Of a stretch of 64,000 nt of DNA, positions 15,405 to 23,871 are shown piece after piece. A program made the position numbers and the translations under genes. Source of the stretch: Obrimoposthia wandeli (taxonomy: Eukaryota); the NCBI GenBank assembly GCA_977020255.1, contig CDROCS010002834.1, positions 372,001 through 436,000 on the forward strand, given 5' to 3'. The notes below the pieces were generated by a model. The model did not search any database. It had not been told where the DNA came from and was given only the letters and a program-made list of their open reading frames with translations. How positions within the stretch are numbered: the first letter of the stretch is position 1; the number at the start of each line of letters is the position of its first letter.

Positions 15405-17282
15405 TTACGCGACGTTCACGGTTGGGATTGCTTGTTCGCAACCTAAACGCACTTCTAGTGCCACTTCATCACACGCATGCTGACGTGGACAACGGTCACA
15501 ATCTTTCATCACTTTTTCTGGCAGTAATGATTTCGAGGTTGGAATAAAGCCCTGCTTCATAAAAAACTCTGGCAGTCGTGTCAGTACAAAAACCTTTTTG
15601 ATTGCCATTTGATCCGCTTTCTCAATCAAATGTTCAACAATCGCTTTCCCCTGACCTTGTTCTTGCCAACCCGCTTCGATTCCTAGCGAACGGATTTCAG
15701 CTAACCCCGAGTCATAAACATATAACGACGCACAGCCCGTTACGACACCATGGTGTTCTGCCACGGCAAATGAGCCAATATCTCGGACTAATTCATTCCG
15801 TTTTCTCGGCAAGTTTTCACCCAGCCCAGCCCAGTAAACCACCATGCTTTCAATGGCATCAAGATCGGTTAAACGCGCACCACGCACTTTAACGCCCGGT
15901 GAATAACGTTTTTCTAAACGCTTCTCAACCTGCTCAATCGCATAATCAACCTGATTGGGTGCGACACCGCCTAAGGCACAACGTTTATCAAGGCATGATT
16001 GAATCGTCAGAATGGAATAAACATCCTCTTCAATAACCGCCGAAAATTGTTTCATCTCGTCGAGAGATAATTCTTCTAACGCGCAGCCTTTCGCAATGGC
16101 AGCAACAACAGCAACCCCCACAATATGGTGAGCTTCACGGAAGGGAATGCCTTTTGATACCAAGTAATCTGCAAGCTCGGTTGCATTCGAATAACCTTGC
16201 ATTGCGGCTTCTAGGGTACGTTCTTTATTAACTTGAATACCGTCGAAACATAACGCTGCCATTTCCATACAGTCATGCCAGCTATCAAGCGCATCGAAAA
16301 GACCTTCTTTGTCTTCTTGCATGTCTTTGTTGTATGCCAGAGGTAGGGCTTTAACGGTCATCATCATGCCCGTCATTGCACCATAAACACGGCCACATTT
16401 ACCACGGATAAGTTCAAGCGCATCAGGGTTTTTCTTCTGTGGCATCAACGACGATCCTGATGTCACGGTATCGGCTAACTCGATGAAATTTGATTCACCT
16501 GAGTTGTAAAAAATTAAATCTTCAGCCATACGTGAGAGGTGAAGCATCGAGATAGAAGCAACCGAAAGTAGCTCCATCACATGATCACGATCAGACACGG
16601 AATCTAAACTGTTACGCGTCGCACGGTGGAAACCTAAACTGTGCGCAAGTACTTCACGATCAATCGGATATGCCGTGCCTGCTAACGCGCCAGATCCTAA
16701 CGGACAAGTATCTAGACGATCTAAAGCATCACTTAAACGCGAGTGGTCACGCTCAAACATCTCGACATACGCTAAGCACCAATGTGCAAAGGTAACAGGC
16801 TGAGCACGCTGCAAGTGCGTATAACCGGGTAATACCGTACCTTGATGAGCACGAGCCACAGAAACAAATTGATTCTGTAATTTGTCGAGCATAAGCAGAA
16901 GCTGCTGACCTTGTTGACGGCACCACAATTTTAAATCGGTTGCCACTTGGTCATTACGAGAACGCCCTGTGTGTAATTTTTTACCCAAATCACCCACTTT
17001 GCTGATCAGTTGCTGTTCAACCCAACTATGGATATCTTCAGCATCCGAGCGCAAAATTTGCTCTGGATCTTCCATTACCGCCAGTTTTAGCTCATTCAAT
17101 GCTAATTCTAAACGCTGCTGCTCTTCTTCTGTTAAAACATTAACCTGTCGTAATGCTTTTGACCATGCAATAGAACCAACGATGTCTTGCTCCGCCAAAC
17201 GGTAATCAAAACGTAATGAATCGTTAAACTGCTTAAACCGTGTGTCAGCTGCCTGACTAAAACGTCCGCCCCATAATGCCAT
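15405..17282 (-). CDS. argH: Bifunctional argininosuccinate lyase / N-acetylglutamate synthase ArgH(A)
   Basis: [20 protein letters not shown] lyase signature, plus a ~160-aa C-terminal GNAT domain (AEIRSLG...[26 protein letters not shown]). Confidence 0.97.
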
Positions 17283-17394
17283 GGTACTACTCCTATGCTT
17301 TACTGCTCGACTTGCTCATTGCTTCATTATTGTTATAACGGCTCACCTCACCTTCTGCAATATTCAGTCAAAAGGCAAGATGAAAGTCACTTTG

Positions 17395-18609
17395 TTATTT
17401 TTGTTTTTTCTGTGTATTCAATGCACGGATACGACTTGCTAACGAGTAAAGGCGAATGAAACCACCAGCATGGCTGTGATCGTAAACGTCATCTTCACCG
17501 AAGGTTGCAAACTCTTCAGAGTACAAGCTATTCATTGAACGTTTCTGAATCACTGTAGCTTGACCTTTATACAGCTTCACTACAACTTCACCACTCACAT
17601 CTTGAGCCAATTCATCTGCTGCTGCTAACATCGATTTACAAAGCGGGGTAAACCAACGCCCGTCATAAATAAGGTGTGACGCTTTAAGACCTACCGTCTC
17701 ACGGAATTCATACGACTCTTTATCAAGCACTAATTGCTCTACCGCACGTAACGCTTCGTTCATGATTGTGCCGCCTGGCGTTTCATAACAACCACGAGAC
17801 TTAATACCAACCAAACGGTTTTCAACGATATCGATACGGCCCACACCGTGTTCTGCCCCTTTTTCATTTAGGTAAGTAAGGGCATTAAACGGCGACATTG
17901 CTTCACCATCGACAGCAACAACTTCACCTTTTTCCACCAAGATAGACACAGTTTCAGCTTTTTCTGGTGCATTCTCAGGATCTTTCGTCCAAACCCAGCA
18001 CAGTTCGTTCGACTGATTCCAGGTATTTTCTAACACCCCACCTTCTGTTGAAATGTGCCATGCGTTTGCATCACGAGAGTAGATTTTTTCAAGTGATGCC
18101 GTACAAGGAATATCACGCTCGGCAAGGTAATCTAGCAATGCTTCACGGCTACGTAGATCCCACTCACGCCATGGTGCAATCACCGTTAGTTGAGGAGCAA
18201 GCGCGGCATACGCACCTTCAAAACGAACCTGATCGTTACCTTTACCGGTACAGCCATGACATACAGCATCAGCACCGACGGCTAATGCACATTCAACTTG
18301 TGCTTTCGCGATAATAGGGCGTGCCATTGACGTACCCAACAAGTACTTACCTTCGTAAATAGCACCTGTCTTGAGGCTTGGGTAGATGTAATCTGCTACC
18401 ATTTCTTCTTTTAGATCGGCGATGTAGCAAGATGATGCGCCAGATGCGATCGCTTTCTCTTCAATACCTTCAAGCTCAGCGGCACCTTGACCAACATCAG
18501 CCACAAAAGCGACAACTTCACAGTCATAGTTTTCTTTTAACCATGGGATGATTGCTGATGTATCTAGACCGCCGGAATAGGCTAATACGACTTTAGTTAC
18601 CTTACTCAT
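17395..18609 (-). CDS. argG: Argininosuccinate synthase
   Basis: [36 protein letters not shown]. Confidence 0.98.
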
Positions 18610-18691
18610 GATGCTCTCCTTGTGCCCGTTCGACGGTCATACCGCTCAGGCGTTTCTTATTAAAATGGCTTATTAAATACAGATTGAAATC

Positions 18692-19471
18692 TTAACTTGA
18701 GAACTTGGTCCCGATGTTTTGCCCATCAAACAAAGCCGCTAATTTATCGGGATAACGCCACGTCGCCACTTCGATAGGACGACCTAACGCTTTTGCCGCT
18801 TCAATAGCCGCACGAACTTTTACTATCATGCCGTCAGTAATAACCGCTTGTGTGATTAAGTCTTCTGCTTGCTGCTCTGTTAGTGTTGGAATTAAATAAC
18901 CTTTGCCATCTAACACACCGCTCACATCAGATAACAGAACTAATTCAGCATCTAATGCGGCAGCAACGGCCACTGCAGCTTGATCGGCATTGACGTTCAT
19001 CAATTCGCCATTAGCATCCAAACCAATTGAGCTCACTATTGGTAAATAACCTGACGACATAATCTGGCTAACCAGTGCACCATTGCCAGGTGCCGCTTTG
19101 CCTACCGACCCTAACTCTGGGTCTAGTTCAGTAACGAGACATAAGCCACCATCAGCCAAACTTAGCCCTACCGCCGCAACACCTGACTTAATCGCTTGCC
19201 CTTGCAGCATTTTATTCGCAGTTCCGGCTAACGCACCGACAATAAAAGGGATTTGCGCTTTAGGTGTCACTCTTAAGCCTTCTTTCTTAACCGTTTCCAG
19301 TTGCAGCTGCTTCATCAAATCATCAACAAGGTAGCCACCACCATGCACCAGCAGTAATGGCCGCTGTGCCGACGCTTGATATGCACTGATCGCGGTAAAT
19401 AATTTTTCAAGGGTGTCGTTACATGACAGAACAGCACCACCTAACTTAATAACTAAAGGGATCTGGCTCAT
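18692..19471 (-). CDS. argB: Acetylglutamate kinase
   Basis: [28 protein letters not shown]. Confidence 0.97.
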
Positions 19472-19481
19472 AGTGATGCTC

Positions 19482-20495
19482 CTATACCAACGCCGTTAAT
19501 TGCGGGAATTCATTTCGAATATTTATGCACTGCATCGCTTGTGATGAAGCACCTTTTAATAGGTTATCAATCGCAGATGTTAAAACAATGTGCTGACCTT
19601 GTACTTTCCAACCTATATCGCAGAAACAAGTATTAACAACATTTTGAATACTTGCTGTTTGCTCGCCCAGTAAACGTACTGCATGAGCATCGTCTGACGC
19701 TTGATATGCAGCAGCCATAGAATAAGCAACTTGCTGCGCATTAACGCCGTCTGCTAATTTCGCGGTAATCGTTGCAAGAATACCGCGCTTAAAGTTGCCA
19801 AGGTGCGGGATAAAAATAACGTCACAATCAAGATGATTGGCGATTTCAGGTTGATGTCGGTGAGTAAATACCCCGTAAGCTTGTAGGCTCACTTCGCAAT
19901 AACTATTCACCATTGAGGCTTTACGACCAGCCCCAGAAGCACCACTCACAGCATTAATGACAGGCCATTGATTTTTATCGATAAGCCCAGCTTCAAGCAA
20001 TGGCTTCAATGCCAACTGTGACGCTGTAGGGTAACAACCCGGAACCGCAATTAACTGCGCGTGTTTTACGGCTTCGCTATTCCACTCTGCAAGTCCGTAT
20101 ACTGCTTGCTCTAGCCACTGAGTATGCTGATGCTCAAAACCATAGTATTTGTTATAAAAATCATCATCTTTAACCCTGAACGCCCCAGACAAGTCAAACA
20201 CCTGACACCCTGCAGCAAGAAAAATAGGGGCTAGGTTATGGCTAACTTCATGCGCTGTCGCAAGCAGAACAATGTCAGCCTGTTTGGCAATATTTTCTGG
20301 GCTCGTTAACGGCTGTAAAGGTAGGTCAATAATGCCTTTTAATTGACCATGTAAGTCACTAATAGGTTTATTCGCATCTAGGCTATTGGCCGAAACATAT
20401 AAACCAGCAAGTTCAAGATGTGGATGTACGTGCACCATTTTTGCTAATTCGGCACCGGTGTAGCCGCTAGCGCCTACAATAAGGGTGTTCAACAT
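19482..20495 (-). CDS. argC: N-acetyl-gamma-glutamyl-phosphate reductase
   Basis: [35 protein letters not shown]. Confidence 0.98.
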
Positions 20496-20601
20496 AATAA
20501 TTTCCGTTTATTTTGCTTTGATTGTTAAAGCGTTAGGTTTGAAACAGCGCTGCTGAAGCAGCTAATGATGAGGTGCACGCGAGGCACCAAGCGATTAAGA
20601 C

Positions 20602-20649
20602 TTAGCGTCGTCGGAGGGAATCTTGATTGTTAATCATCGCTTGGTTCAT
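20602..20649 (-). CDS. Putative arginine-sensing leader peptide MNQAMINNQDSLRRR
   Basis: AGGA 9 nt before ATG; ends CGA CGA CGC TAA; 106 nt upstream of argC; flanked by a 10-bp perfect inverted repeat. Confidence 0.55.
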   Translation of the reverse strand: MNQAMINNQDSLRRR

Positions 20650-20716
20650 GTTAATTTTTCCTACGTCTTGTTCAAAAATCCGTTTGCTATCCATGCAAAT
20701 CGATACGAACGCGAAG

Positions 20717-20755
20717 AATAGATTTTTATTCACGCCTTCTGAATTAATATGTTTA
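20717..20755. promoter_or_regulatory. Tandem ARG boxes (ArgR operator)
   Basis: 14-nt cores TAGATTTTTATTCA (20719-32) and TGAATTAATATGTT (20740-53) lie 7 nt apart, i.e. two 18-bp boxes spaced 3 bp, the canonical ArgR geometry. Confidence 0.75.
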
Positions 20756-20778
20756 CCGATTAATCTATTCGCTGTCAA
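20750..20778 (-). promoter_or_regulatory. Putative sigma70 promoter of argCBGH
   Basis: TTGACA-17 nt-TAAACA; the -10 is weak and overlaps ARG box 1. Confidence 0.5.
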
Positions 20779-20860
20779 CAGCGGAAGCAGAAAAAATGCC
20801 ATTTCTCCTCAATATCCGCTTATATGAAGTATCATTTATCCTTATTCCACCAGATTCATT

Positions 20861-20950
20861 GGTAAAACTGGCGAAAGCACAAATCTACGCACCCTCATGA
20901 CCCTTCAATCTATCCCCTATTAGGTTTGATCTATTTCGCTGAGTTTTACC
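20861..20950. repeat. 90-bp imperfect inverted-repeat element
   Basis: Terminal GGTAAAACT/AGTTTTACC, inner GCGAAA/TTTCGC and CAAATCTA/TAGGTTTG arms. Confidence 0.6.
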
Positions 20951-21240
20951 TTCTTTAATAAGGTTGCTAAGGCATAATTCCTGACGGTGCTATGATGACA
21001 AAGCAAACCATCACTGCTTCATTTTTCAACCAAACAAGTAAAAGCACACAAAAAATGTGCTTAGTGACTCATTTTTACGAAATAAACTTTCAAGGTTGGA
21101 ACAAGTACATGACCAAAATCAAATCTAGCTCGATTTATCTCCGATAAATGCAATCGATGTTGACCTGAAAGTGGGATCGCGGATAGATTGTTTAGTAGAT
21201 GGATGAATTTGATGTAACTAAATTACGAGATGGATCCGAT

Positions 21241-23871
21241 ATGAATGAAAAGTACAGTGCATTAAGAAGTAACGTAAGTATGCTCGGCCACATGCTGGGA
21301 AATACTATTAAAGATGCGCATGGTGAGCCTCTATTTGATAAAGTAGAAACCATACGTAAGCTGTCTAAATCTGCTCGTGCAGGAAATGATAGCGATCGCG
21401 CTAAGTTAATCGACGAATTGCAAAATCTTCCAGACGATCAACTTCTTCCTGTCGCTCGCGCCTTTAGTCAATTTTTGAATTTGACCAACATTGCCGAACA
21501 ATACCATACTATTTCTCGCCACAGCGAAGAGCACGTTTGCAGCCCTGATTCTATCGACTCTTTATTTGGTAAACTGAATGACAAGAGTATCAGCCAGTTT
21601 GATTCCATTCAGGCGGTACGCGATTTAAATATCGAGCTGGTGCTAACAGCACACCCAACAGAAATTGCTCGTCGTACCATGATCCACAAATTGGTACAGA
21701 TTAATAAATGCTTATCAAACCTTGAATTGAGTGAATTATCTCACAGTGAACGCCAGCGCGTTGAACAACGCTTAGAGCAACTGATCGCACAAGCATGGCA
21801 TTCCGATGTTATCCGTAAGCAACGCCCGACTCCGCTTGATGAAGCCAAATGGGGATTTGCCGTTGTTGAAAATTCCCTCTGGCATGCGGTGCCTGAATTT
21901 TTACGTCAGTTTGATGAAAAACTCGTACAACACCTTGGTGAAAAACTGCCACTCGATGCATCTCCCGTAAAATTCACCTCTTGGATGGGCGGTGACCGAG
22001 ACGGTAACCCGTTTGTCACCTCTGAGGTAACACGTGAAGTTATGCTACTTTCTCGCTGGAAAGCAGCTGATTTATTCTTGGGCGATATTCAAGAATTAGT
22101 TAGTGAACTGTCAATGGTTAAATGTAATGACCAAGTTCGCGAACTCGCCGGTAAAGAGCACGAACCTTACCGCGCTATTTTAAAAGACTTACGCACCAAA
22201 CTAACCAATACCCGTGATGTATTGGCAGCCAAGATGAATCAACAAGATGCGCCAAACCTCGACATTATTGATGATGTTGATCAACTCTGGACACCGTTGC
22301 ACGCTTGTTACCAATCACTGCGTGAATGTGGCATGGGCATTATTGCAGATGGCCTATTGCTTGATGTTCTTCGCCGCATTAAATGTTTCGGTATCCATCT
22401 TGTTCGTCTTGATATTCGCCAAGAAAGTACTCGTCACTCCGATGTTATTTCTGAACTTACCCGCTACCTGGGGCTCGGTGATTACGATCAATGGAATGAA
22501 CAAGATAAAGTTGCGTTCTTAGTACGTGAGTTATCGTCTAAGCGCCCTCTATTACCGCGAGATTGGCAACCATCGGCAGAAGTACAAGAAGTACTCGATA
22601 CTTGTAAAGCCGTTGCAGAGCAATCTCGTGAAGCATTAGGCGCCTATGTTATCTCGATGGCACGCACGGCATCAGATGTGCTTGCTGTTCACCTCTTGCT
22701 GAAAGAAGCAGGCTGCCCATTCCGTATGGATGTGTGCCCACTGTTTGAAACACTCGATGATTTAAATAACGGTGCAGCCGTTATTAAACAATTAATGAGT
22801 ATTGATTGGTATCGCGGTTTCATTCAAAACTACCAAATGGTGATGATTGGCTATTCTGACTCAGCAAAAGATGCCGGTGTAATGGCAGCAGGCTGGGCAC
22901 AATACCGTGCAATGGAAGAGTTAGTCGAAGTCTGTGAAGATGCCAGTGTCGAACTAACACTGTTCCACGGTCGTGGTGGTTCTATTGGTCGTGGTGGTGC
23001 GCCAGCCCATGCTGCACTACTCTCGCAACCTCCTCGTAGCTTAAAGGGTGGCCTACGCGTAACAGAGCAAGGTGAAATGATCCGTTTCAAGCTTGGTTTA
23101 CCTGACGTAGCCGTAAATAGCTTGTGCCTATATACGAGCGCAATTCTAGAAGCGAACCTATTACCGCCACCAGCACCGAAAAAAGAATGGTGCGATTTGA
23201 TGGATGTGCTGTCAGAGGTATCGTGTGAATCATATCGTAACGTGGTTCGTGGTAGCGAAGAGTTCGTTCCTTACTTTCGCGCGGCAACACCAGAACTTGA
23301 ATTAGGTAAATTACCGCTGGGATCTCGTCCTGCAAAACGTAACCCTAACGGTGGTGTTGAAAGCTTACGTGCGATTCCATGGATTTTTGCATGGTCGCAA
23401 AACCGTCTGTTATTGCCTGCATGGTTAGGCGCCGGTGAAGCCATTCAATATTCTATCGACAAAGGGCACGCGCAGTTATTAGAAGACATGTGTCGTGAGT
23501 GGCCATTCTTCTCTACACGTTTAGGTATGCTAGAAATGGTCTACACCAAAACGAATGTGGGTATCGCTGAATATTATGACCAACGCTTAACAGATAAGTC
23601 GTTATGGCCATTAGGGCAAAAACTACGCAACCAGTTACAGCAAGATATTAAAACCGTTTTAAACGTAGAAAATAATGCACACCTCATGGAGCAAAACCCT
23701 TGGGGTGCTGAAGCTATCCGTTTACGTAATATTTATGTTGAGCCACTCAATATGCTGCAAGCAGAATTGTTGTATCGAACTCGTCAGCAAGACGAACCAT
23801 CGCCAATTTTAGAAGAAGCGCTTATGGTCAGTATTGCCGGTATCGCAACAGGTATGCGTAACACGGGTTAA
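21241..23871 (+). CDS. ppc: Phosphoenolpyruvate carboxylase
   Basis: [56 protein letters not shown]; start [12 protein letters not shown] preferred over 21199. Confidence 0.98.

Follow-up and report, generated by a model that had tools for sequence, protein, structure and literature searches.

Attenuation by leader peptides is the textbook mode of control for the trp, his, leu, thr, ilv and phe operons. In E. coli, the enzymes of arginine biosynthesis are controlled via ArgR only, those of histidine biosynthesis via attenuation and those of tryptophan biosynthesis via both (PMC6345581). Within the full-text literature, with most subscription journals out of reach, we found no leader peptide described for an arginine biosynthetic operon, and the table of Rho-controlled leaders in a 2025 review contains no arginine-biosynthesis leader (PMC12360218). 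Two described systems come close in other respects. In the upstream open reading frame (uORF) of Salmonella speF, two consecutive Arg codons sense arginine by ribosome pausing and translation counteracts Rho (PMC6386406), and in the Rho-dependent uORF attenuators the loading of Rho depends on where the ribosome sits or on whether it is released (PMC12360218). Here we analyze a candidate leader-peptide attenuator upstream of the arginine operon argC-argB-argG-argH(A) in a DNA stretch of 64,000 nucleotides (contig CDROCS010002834.1; hereafter the window, to which positions refer unless another locus is named). An initial annotation had proposed the element, and its interpretation is supported in its core: all the features it named could be read in the sequence where it had placed them, and its reference to an existing Arg-codon leader, that of speF, agrees with the literature (PMC6386406). 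The combined data make it likely that the argC leader is a ribosome-mediated sensor of charged tRNA-Arg, in which translation of the uORF sets a switch between two RNA helices, P1 and P2. The decisive support is comparative, as the evidence from the single window is thin.

The putative leader of argC is around 250 nt long and contains a uORF of 15 codons, which is preceded by a Shine-Dalgarno sequence and followed by a series of helices:

20659..20662, minus strand: uORF Shine-Dalgarno sequence AGGA, which precedes the start codon (ATG, 20649) by 9 nt
20602..20649, minus strand: uORF MNQAMINNQDSLRRR, 15 codons plus stop (sequence reading and conservation)
20605..20613, minus strand: Arg codons CGA CGA CGC of the uORF; the TAA stop follows at 20604-20602
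20636..20645, minus strand: 5' arm of P1, ACCAAGCGAU, uORF codons 2-5 (inverted repeat, covariation)
20586..20595, minus strand: 3' arm of P1, AUCGCUUGGU, which begins 6 nt past the stop codon (inverted repeat, covariation)
20572..20588, minus strand: P2 hairpin GGUGC-loop-GCACC, arms 20588-20584 and 20576-20572 (covariation)
20563..20571, minus strand: short single-stranded linker rich in C, UCAUCAUUA; relatives have CCCAUCA or CCCCUUCAUC
20549..20562, minus strand: P3 hairpin GCUGC-UUCA-GCAGC, no U tract after it (covariation)
20496..20548, minus strand: distal leader, G-poor; contains a minor hairpin at 20531-20515 and, at 20505-20503, the ribosome-binding site (RBS) of argC, GGA

Like the leaders of the trp/his type, this one has a short ORF with a start codon and an RBS between the promoter and the first gene, and tandem codons for the operon's own amino acid (3-5 Arg codons in the seven lineages described below). 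A longer in-frame ORF of 66 codons (20802-20602) was rejected as the functional unit, considering that its open frame is restricted to the nearest relatives and thus not conserved. The window further holds a direct repeat of 11 nt without mismatches (UUAACAAUCAA, RNA sense; 20518-20528 and 20623-20633), one copy of which lies within the uORF and the other in the loop of the small hairpin before the argC RBS; the repeat is clade-restricted.

To judge by the identity of its ArgC with the ArgC of Photobacterium frigidiphilum, P. profundum and P. indicum (93-94%), the source of the window sequence is a Photobacterium of the profundum group. Conservation of the uORF and its Arg codons in relatives had been named beforehand as the check on the proposal, and both are indeed conserved, well beyond the close relatives. 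An ArgC scan over species-representative genomes yielded 24 Photobacterium loci, 22 of which carry the element, whereas the remaining two represent a second argC paralogue. Together with further carriers, being P. swingsii and six metagenome loci, this gives around 30 Photobacterium-type loci. The peptides follow the pattern M-[NSI]-Q-[AT], seven variable residues, [LF]-R-R-R-stop, and count 14-15 codons. All 18 distinct sequences retain the ATG, the frame and this length, none of them has an in-frame stop, and the sole length change is an in-frame deletion of 3 nt in P. angustum; the AGGA is found at the same spacing in most Photobacterium leaders. The middle codons of these 18 sequences vary at all three codon positions. 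Given that frame and length are kept while the middle codons vary in this way, the sequences show the pattern of a unit that needs translation, with a peptide sequence that would be of little importance. By comparison, the stretch CGA CGA CGC UAA GUC at the end of the uORF is invariant in all aligned Photobacterium leaders (23 of 23).

The second argC paralogue, which is around 80% identical, is located after a small acetyltransferase gene in P. sagamiensis (L012:1-1610) and in a metagenome-assembled genome labelled Vibrio sp. UBA2441 (L018:1-2500). Within these two regions no Arg-run leader was found before the paralogue. The two loci have in common a conserved block upstream of the acetyltransferase gene, which includes a 5-codon ORF.

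The helix P1 is formed by a perfect inverted repeat of 10 bp (ACCAAGCGAT at 20645-20636 and ATCGCTTGGT at 20595-20586). The extension by GATTAA/TTAATC that had been attributed to it is clade-specific. The end of the 3' arm of P1 and the start of the 5' arm of P2 share the trinucleotide GGU, and P1 and P2 are therefore mutually exclusive; P3 is independent of both. The segment from the uORF through P1 (20650-20584) has a folding energy of -17.3 kcal/mol, which was reached by none of 200 shuffles. The leader as a whole (251 nt) is not unusually stable compared to shuffles (z -0.27), and its global stability is thus uninformative.

The two competing helices of the initial annotation both show covariation. 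RNAalifold recovers P1 with compensatory changes from AU to GC and from GC to AU. A covariance model that was built from 12 leaders and run on the window and 80 loci gave 30 matches, exactly one for each Photobacterium-type ppc-argC leader, and no match in around 45 Vibrio, Aliivibrio or enteric loci, nor elsewhere in the window. In P1, 95.8% of the cells pair and four of the nine pairs have changed on both sides; for P3 these numbers are 98% and three of five. Taken jointly, P1 and P3 are paired in 96.7% of the cells and 7 of their 14 pairs have changed on both sides, a score that was reached in 0 of 500 shuffles, while controls with slid positions were paired for 20-42%. P2 (4 pairs) is paired in 98.9% of the cells across 24 sequences, with both-side changes in one of the four pairs; its shuffle and slid controls were scored only jointly with P3. 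The P2 variants that still pair include GGUGCA/UGCGCC, GGUGCC/GGCACC, GGUAC/GUGCC and GGGCG/CGCCU. The leader thus contains mutually exclusive, covarying helices like the 1:2 and 2:3 helices of the trp/his type. A scan of positions 19500-22000 against Rfam 15 (both strands, E <=10) returned four chance-level matches (E 2 to 9), far below the gathering scores.

An Arg-run uORF was found before argC in every ppc-adjacent argC locus examined, i.e. in the roughly 30 Photobacterium-type loci and in those of Enterovibrio, Grimontia, Veronia and Parasalinivibrio. Enterovibrio norvegicus and Grimontia marina possess an unrelated uORF of 15 codons, MDKFS(TP/IS)LLQRRRRR-stop, which ends in CGA CGA CGC CGA CGU UAA. 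The uORF of Veronia pacifica (MITYYQQRATSLRRCR) ends in RRCR-stop (CGA CGA UGC CGA UAA) and that of Parasalinivibrio latis (MDFCFTARIFTYRRRLA) in RRRLA-stop (CGA CGA CGC, then CUC GCC UGA). In all four genera, the 5' arm of a helix is made up of the Arg codons together with the stop codon. The 3' arm of this helix overlaps the 5' part of a P2-like hairpin, or in Parasalinivibrio covers it, and the P2-like hairpin is succeeded by a stretch rich in C and a P3-like hairpin. Since the Arg codons and stop themselves pair there with the segment that overlaps P2, the competition of the P1/P2 type is, as far as can be read from the leaders, built from different sequence in these genera.

The element extends beyond the Vibrionaceae. 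Two look-ups picked from distant ArgC representatives both had an Arg-run uORF before argCBFG. The first, a gammaproteobacterial argC-argB-argF-argG locus (L115; ArgC 54% identical), has a uORF of 22 codons (MISLDLHNFYVPLDRPLPSRRR) that ends in CGA CGA CGA UAA. At 12 nt past the stop codon follows a hairpin of -18.1 kcal/mol (z -4.5) with the tail UAUUUUUUCC, which ends around 30 nt before argC. The region L115:2352-2470 looks like a classical Arg attenuator, in which a canonical intrinsic terminator comes right after the uORF. This classical terminator version in a distant relative had not been foreseen by the initial annotation. Tandem ARG-box-like sites are seen by eye upstream in L115. The second locus, of Litorilituus lipolyticus (Colwelliaceae; L116:2348-2386; ArgC 48% identical), has the uORF MVKLQIMRRRYR, ending in CGA CGA CGA UAU AGA UGA; here argE is divergent from argCBFG and a long AU-rich hairpin follows the uORF.

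Of the genera that had been proposed for alignment, Photobacterium bore out the prediction, whereas in Vibrio and Aliivibrio the element is absent, which had not been anticipated either. It was missing from Vibrio splendidus, Vibrio sp. RE86, V. mimicus, Aliivibrio fischeri and around 70 metagenome loci of the Vibrio/enteric type. In the leaderless loci argE is divergent and located 90-350 nt from argC, while the promoter/ARG-box block is common to both types. Within the Vibrionaceae the leader coincides with the lack of argE at the locus and with the adjacency of ppc and argC. Among around 75 argE-adjacent argC loci a comparable Arg-run ORF was found in Litorilituus only, and a relaxed search of such loci for Arg-rich uORFs recovered only scattered ORFs that were non-conserved or antisense of argE. 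The argE-argC spacer of Aliivibrio fischeri (L113:1420-1465) contains a uORF of 14 codons, MGNTHVTLNGFSLQ, with a good Shine-Dalgarno sequence and zero Arg codons. In the leaderless loci of V. mimicus and V. splendidus (L114:1455-1500 and L025:1460-1500) the argC Shine-Dalgarno sequence seems, by eye, to lie in a small hairpin (AUCCGU...ACGGAU and CUCAA...UUGAG).

In all seven lineages (7/7) the Arg run opens with CGA-CGA. In the 32 long ORFs of the window CGA makes up 9% of the Arg codons and in-frame CGA-CGA pairs do not occur (0); in the arg genes that adjoin the other leaders CGA accounts for 0-14% of the Arg codons. In Salmonella, CGU, CGC and CGA share one tRNA, and CGA was clearly the slowest of these in a his-leader assay, in agreement with the slow decoding that the initial annotation had ascribed to it; in the same assay, de-attenuation was high for Arg-Arg pairs that included CGA (PMC4046918). 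The selection thus seems to act on the codon and not on the amino-acid context, which fits a sensor of tRNA charging and not an arrest peptide that binds a ligand. A rare and slow codon pair that appears to have been selected as the sensing element across lineages would also constitute a natural case of codon choice.

Upstream of the leader lies a putative promoter with candidate sites for ArgR:

20773..20778, minus strand: -35 hexamer TTGACA of the putative argC promoter (sequence reading; conserved in relatives)
20750..20755, minus strand: putative -10 hexamer TAAACA, 17 nt past the -35 hexamer (GGTAAAC conserved in relatives)
20740-20753 and 20719-20732, no strand assigned: two ARG-box-like 14-mers (pattern search, 3 and 2 mismatches)

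The position of TTGACA is kept in Photobacterium, Enterovibrio and Grimontia, and also in the leaderless Vibrio loci. TAAACA resembles the consensus only weakly and was not called in the scan for promoters. The two ARG-box-like sites are 21 bp apart from centre to centre, which is the canonical spacing, and the pair is conserved in relatives including the leaderless Vibrio loci. As single matches to the ARG box are no commoner than chance (45 found versus 58 expected in shuffles), the case rests on the tandem spacing and the conservation; on this basis the sites probably constitute an ArgR operator over the -10 hexamer and the start site. Further upstream of the argC promoter, within the ppc-argC spacer at 21033-21062 (minus strand), a terminator-like hairpin was noted (AAGCACA-TTTTTT-GTGTGCTT plus TTACTTGTTT), which was absent from seven relatives in an exact-pattern search.

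The genes downstream of the leader all matched NCBIfam equivalogs above the cut-off:

20495-19482, minus strand: argC, ATG at 20495
19471-18692, minus strand: argB
18609-17395, minus strand: argG
17282-15405, minus strand: argH fused to an acetyltransferase domain, argH(A)
15405..20495, minus strand: argC-argB-argG-argH(A), the putative target operon (NCBIfam matches)

The N-acetyltransferase domain is fused on at the C-terminus of ArgH (15405-17282, minus strand), and this argH(A) arrangement is known from marine Gammaproteobacteria (PMC1382215). Divergent from argC lies ppc, which starts at 21199 and leaves a ppc-argC spacer of 703 nt. A relic of argE within this spacer was considered and rejected, as tblastn with Vibrio ArgE gave no match in the whole window.

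On the basis of the above the following mechanism may be put forward. Transcription would start near 20743, at the conserved promoter and the tandem ARG boxes, and a ribosome would load on the 15-codon leader ORF as RNA polymerase continues. When arginine is ample, the ribosome would decode CGA-CGA-CGC, terminate at the UAA and depart. The strong P1 would then form and capture the GGU, leaving the 3' arm of P2 and the C-rich tract single-stranded, and transcription would end before or early in argC, probably by the loading of Rho. The linker (20563-20571), which together with the 3' arm of P2 would be exposed only when P1 is formed, is a candidate part of the loading site. When charged tRNA-Arg is scarce, stalling on the slow CGA codons of the terminal Arg run would keep P1 apart; P2 would form, ribosome and P2 would cover the loading region, and the polymerase would enter argCBGH. 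P2 is taken as the 'on' and P1 as the 'off' state because expression of a biosynthetic operon must rise on stalling. In Photobacterium the stalled ribosome would block P1 sterically, with around 30 nt of the 41-nt loop inside the ribosome; in the Enterovibrio type the 5' arm of the P1 equivalent would itself be inside the stalled ribosome.

The choice of Rho as the output follows from the lack of a U tract in the leader. The terminator scan made no call there, P3 included, and an equivalent of the 3:4 hairpin of the trp/his type was found only in L115. The remark in the initial annotation that a good U tract is missing holds across five Vibrionaceae genera. The leader after the uORF has a C/G ratio of 1.5 in the window and of 1.24-2.0 across Photobacterium, compared to a median of 0.67 in 31 leaderless 5' UTRs (untranslated regions) of the Vibrio type. 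In the other genera the ratio is 0.95-1.5, and the C-rich tract is interrupted by P2 and P3. We regard this C-rich, G-poor composition as a hint of Rho. The full reading, in which ArgR control is layered with an attenuator that senses charged tRNA-Arg and has a termination output that is probably Rho-dependent, is moderately probable in our estimation; Rho as the specific output is a tentative choice that falls a little below an even call.

Several observations weigh against this reading. The Shine-Dalgarno sequence of the uORF is poor or distant in the P. halotolerans clade, Enterovibrio and Grimontia. The covariation was counted on alignments that had been fitted to the structure, and their members are in many cases closely related, although the direction of the covariation result is clear in spite of this. 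P1 is almost lost in the Photobacterium-like locus L035, where inspection by eye suggests a short stop-codon hairpin that may take its place. When the Arg codons are masked by a ribosome, minimum-energy folding continues to yield P1, so that in Photobacterium the steric argument carries real weight. No intrinsic terminator or U tract is present in the leaders of the five Vibrionaceae genera, which makes the output step a guess. The C-richness is modest, and Enterovibrio (0.95) and Parasalinivibrio (1.0) do not show it. Finally, the candidate antiterminator of L115 is weak (-4 kcal/mol) and does not surpass shuffles.

A first alternative retains the sensor and changes its effector: P3, or P2 and P3 together, could act as a non-canonical terminator or pause site, or the fold could switch a site for RNase E/G and thereby set the stability of the mRNA. 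P3, which occurs in all five Vibrionaceae genera, is the most universally conserved hairpin and stands at a terminator-like position, with a partly U-rich tail in some species (AUAUUUUCAAAU in P. chitinilyticum and ACUUCUUGUUA in P. angustum), arginine acts on speF via RNase G and alternative folds (PMC6386406), and the support for Rho is compositional only. Most species (P. halotolerans, P. aphoticum, P. ganghwense and P. swingsii among them) nevertheless have no U tract at all after P3, on which ground an intrinsic terminator at P3 was rejected as a general mechanism, and the terminator scan of the leader, as stated, found nothing. Moreover, P3 is not obviously switched, as it never competes with P1 or P2 in any of the predicted folds. 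We consider such an output unlikely.

A second possibility, which was also left open in the initial annotation, is translational control. In an attenuator of the ermC type the stalled ribosome would free the argC RBS while transcription is unchanged. In several minimum-energy folds the sequence UUAACAU before the AUG of the uORF (20647-20654) pairs with the argC start AUGUUGA (20489-20495), and UUAACAUG is near-invariant in most Photobacterium leaders; the closure is kept in P. angustum as UUUAACAU with AUGUUAAA. UUAACAU is missing, though, from the halotolerans clade, from L065 and from the other genera, and this antisense-like pairing was set aside because it is not conserved outside part of Photobacterium. 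In computations on 16 species the unpaired probability of the argC RBS was 0.31-0.66 and hardly changed when the uORF was masked, with no consistent direction, and sequestration of the RBS was rejected on account of this inconsistency. Inspection by eye revealed no conserved stretch able to pair with the argC Shine-Dalgarno sequence, and L115, as a distant relative, relies on a terminator of transcription. Translational control seems very improbable.

A further step down in likelihood is the option that the uORF is untranslated or non-regulatory, in which case the region would serve as a structured RNA, a protein-binding element, the source of a leader-derived small RNA or an internal promoter, with Arg codons that are present by coincidence. 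The nucleotide invariance of CCGACGACGCUAAGUC in Photobacterium, the promoter-like site called by the scan inside the uORF (20654-20626) and the lack of an Rfam family match could all be read in this way. What speaks against it is that in six further lineages, with unrelated flanks, the region before argC again contains an ATG that opens a frame of 12-22 codons, with an Arg run that begins with CGA at or near the stop, whereas among the argE-adjacent loci such an ORF is confined to L116, and that the promoter-like hexamers are missing from the leaders of P. halotolerans, P. aphoticum, P. angustum and L035. The site itself, TTAACA-17 nt-AACAAT (20626-20654, minus strand), is conserved in part of Photobacterium only and could be a secondary promoter or a chance match.

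The least credible option, a peptide that like TnaC, SpeFL or the fungal AAP binds free arginine or ornithine in the tunnel and stalls at the stop codon at high arginine (off), may appeal to the position of the Arg run, which in every lineage lies no more than two codons from the stop, to the hydrophobic L, F or Y before the run in the Vibrionaceae genera except Enterovibrio/Grimontia (Gln after two Leu; L115 has Ser here, and L116 has Met) and to the sensing of small molecules by the short uORFs SpeFL and TnaC (PMC12360218), but is disfavoured by a peptide that outside the run is unconserved within Photobacterium and unrelated between genera, unlike the pocket of an arrest peptide, by the conservation of the codons CGA-CGA, which a sensor at the amino-acid level does not need, by a Cys within the run in Veronia and extra codons after it in Parasalinivibrio and Litorilituus, and by the fact that the ribosome-occupied P2 state would have to be 'off', for which no mechanism suggests itself.

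Taken broadly, the attenuator that reads the charging of tRNA-Arg could belong to an undescribed family of Arg leader peptides in marine Gammaproteobacteria, with a classical form that has a terminator and a terminator-less form in the Vibrionaceae in which P1/P2 gate Rho. Such a family would span Photobacterium, Enterovibrio, Grimontia, Veronia, Parasalinivibrio, Colwelliaceae and others, with CGA runs that read tRNA-Arg charging; in our judgement the case for it is evenly poised. If true, arginine would become one of the few amino acids for which ribosome-mediated attenuation is known, and one sensor would be coupled to two different termination mechanisms. The bacteria concerned would then monitor both free arginine (via ArgR) and charged tRNA-Arg (via the leader), in the way that tryptophan is monitored by the trp operon. 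The terminator of L115 and the terminator-less forms of the Vibrionaceae offer a test of rewiring from intrinsic to probably Rho-dependent termination.

Compared with the known systems, the argC leader fits the features of a trp/his-type attenuator as read from sequence, except for the intrinsic terminator that was encountered in L115 only. It shares with trpL, hisL, leuL, thrL, ilvL and pheL the short leader ORF with its own RBS between the promoter and the first biosynthetic gene, the tandem cognate codons and the overlapping, exclusive helices that are set by the position of the ribosome. Like in trp, the attenuator would be combined with a repressor at the promoter, and L115 even has the hairpin and U tract. 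It differs from the trp/his type in that the amino acid is arginine, in that the five Vibrionaceae genera do without an intrinsic terminator, and in that the Arg run is found at the very end of the ORF, with region 1 in Photobacterium being the 5' end of the ORF and not the regulatory codons.

With respect to the signal that is sensed, the speF uORF (orf34/speFL of Salmonella and E. coli) is by analogy the nearest functional relative. Both are uORFs in a long leader with alternative folds, including a hairpin at the stop codon. speF is, in contrast, a catabolic/polyamine gene, its peptide counts 34 residues with a conserved ornithine-sensing domain, and its Arg codons are found mid-ORF; the effect of arginine runs via RNase G, rare and common Arg codons act equally there, and there is no sequence similarity. 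The combination of a short uORF and a subsequent untranslated C-rich stretch that lacks an intrinsic terminator is shared with tnaC-tnaA, mgtL-mgtA, corL-corA and cruR, but these sense tryptophan, proline/Mg2+ or copper, and Rho is suggested here by composition only. Finally, the promoter region resembles the ArgR-controlled argCBH promoters of E. coli and Vibrio, as it has TTGACA and two ARG-box-like sites at the canonical spacing over the -10 hexamer and the start. In E. coli and Vibrio, however, the argC leader is short and lacks an Arg uORF, and argE is divergent at a distance of 90-210 nt, whereas here argE is missing and around 150 extra nt, holding the uORF and the helices, are found between the operator and argC.

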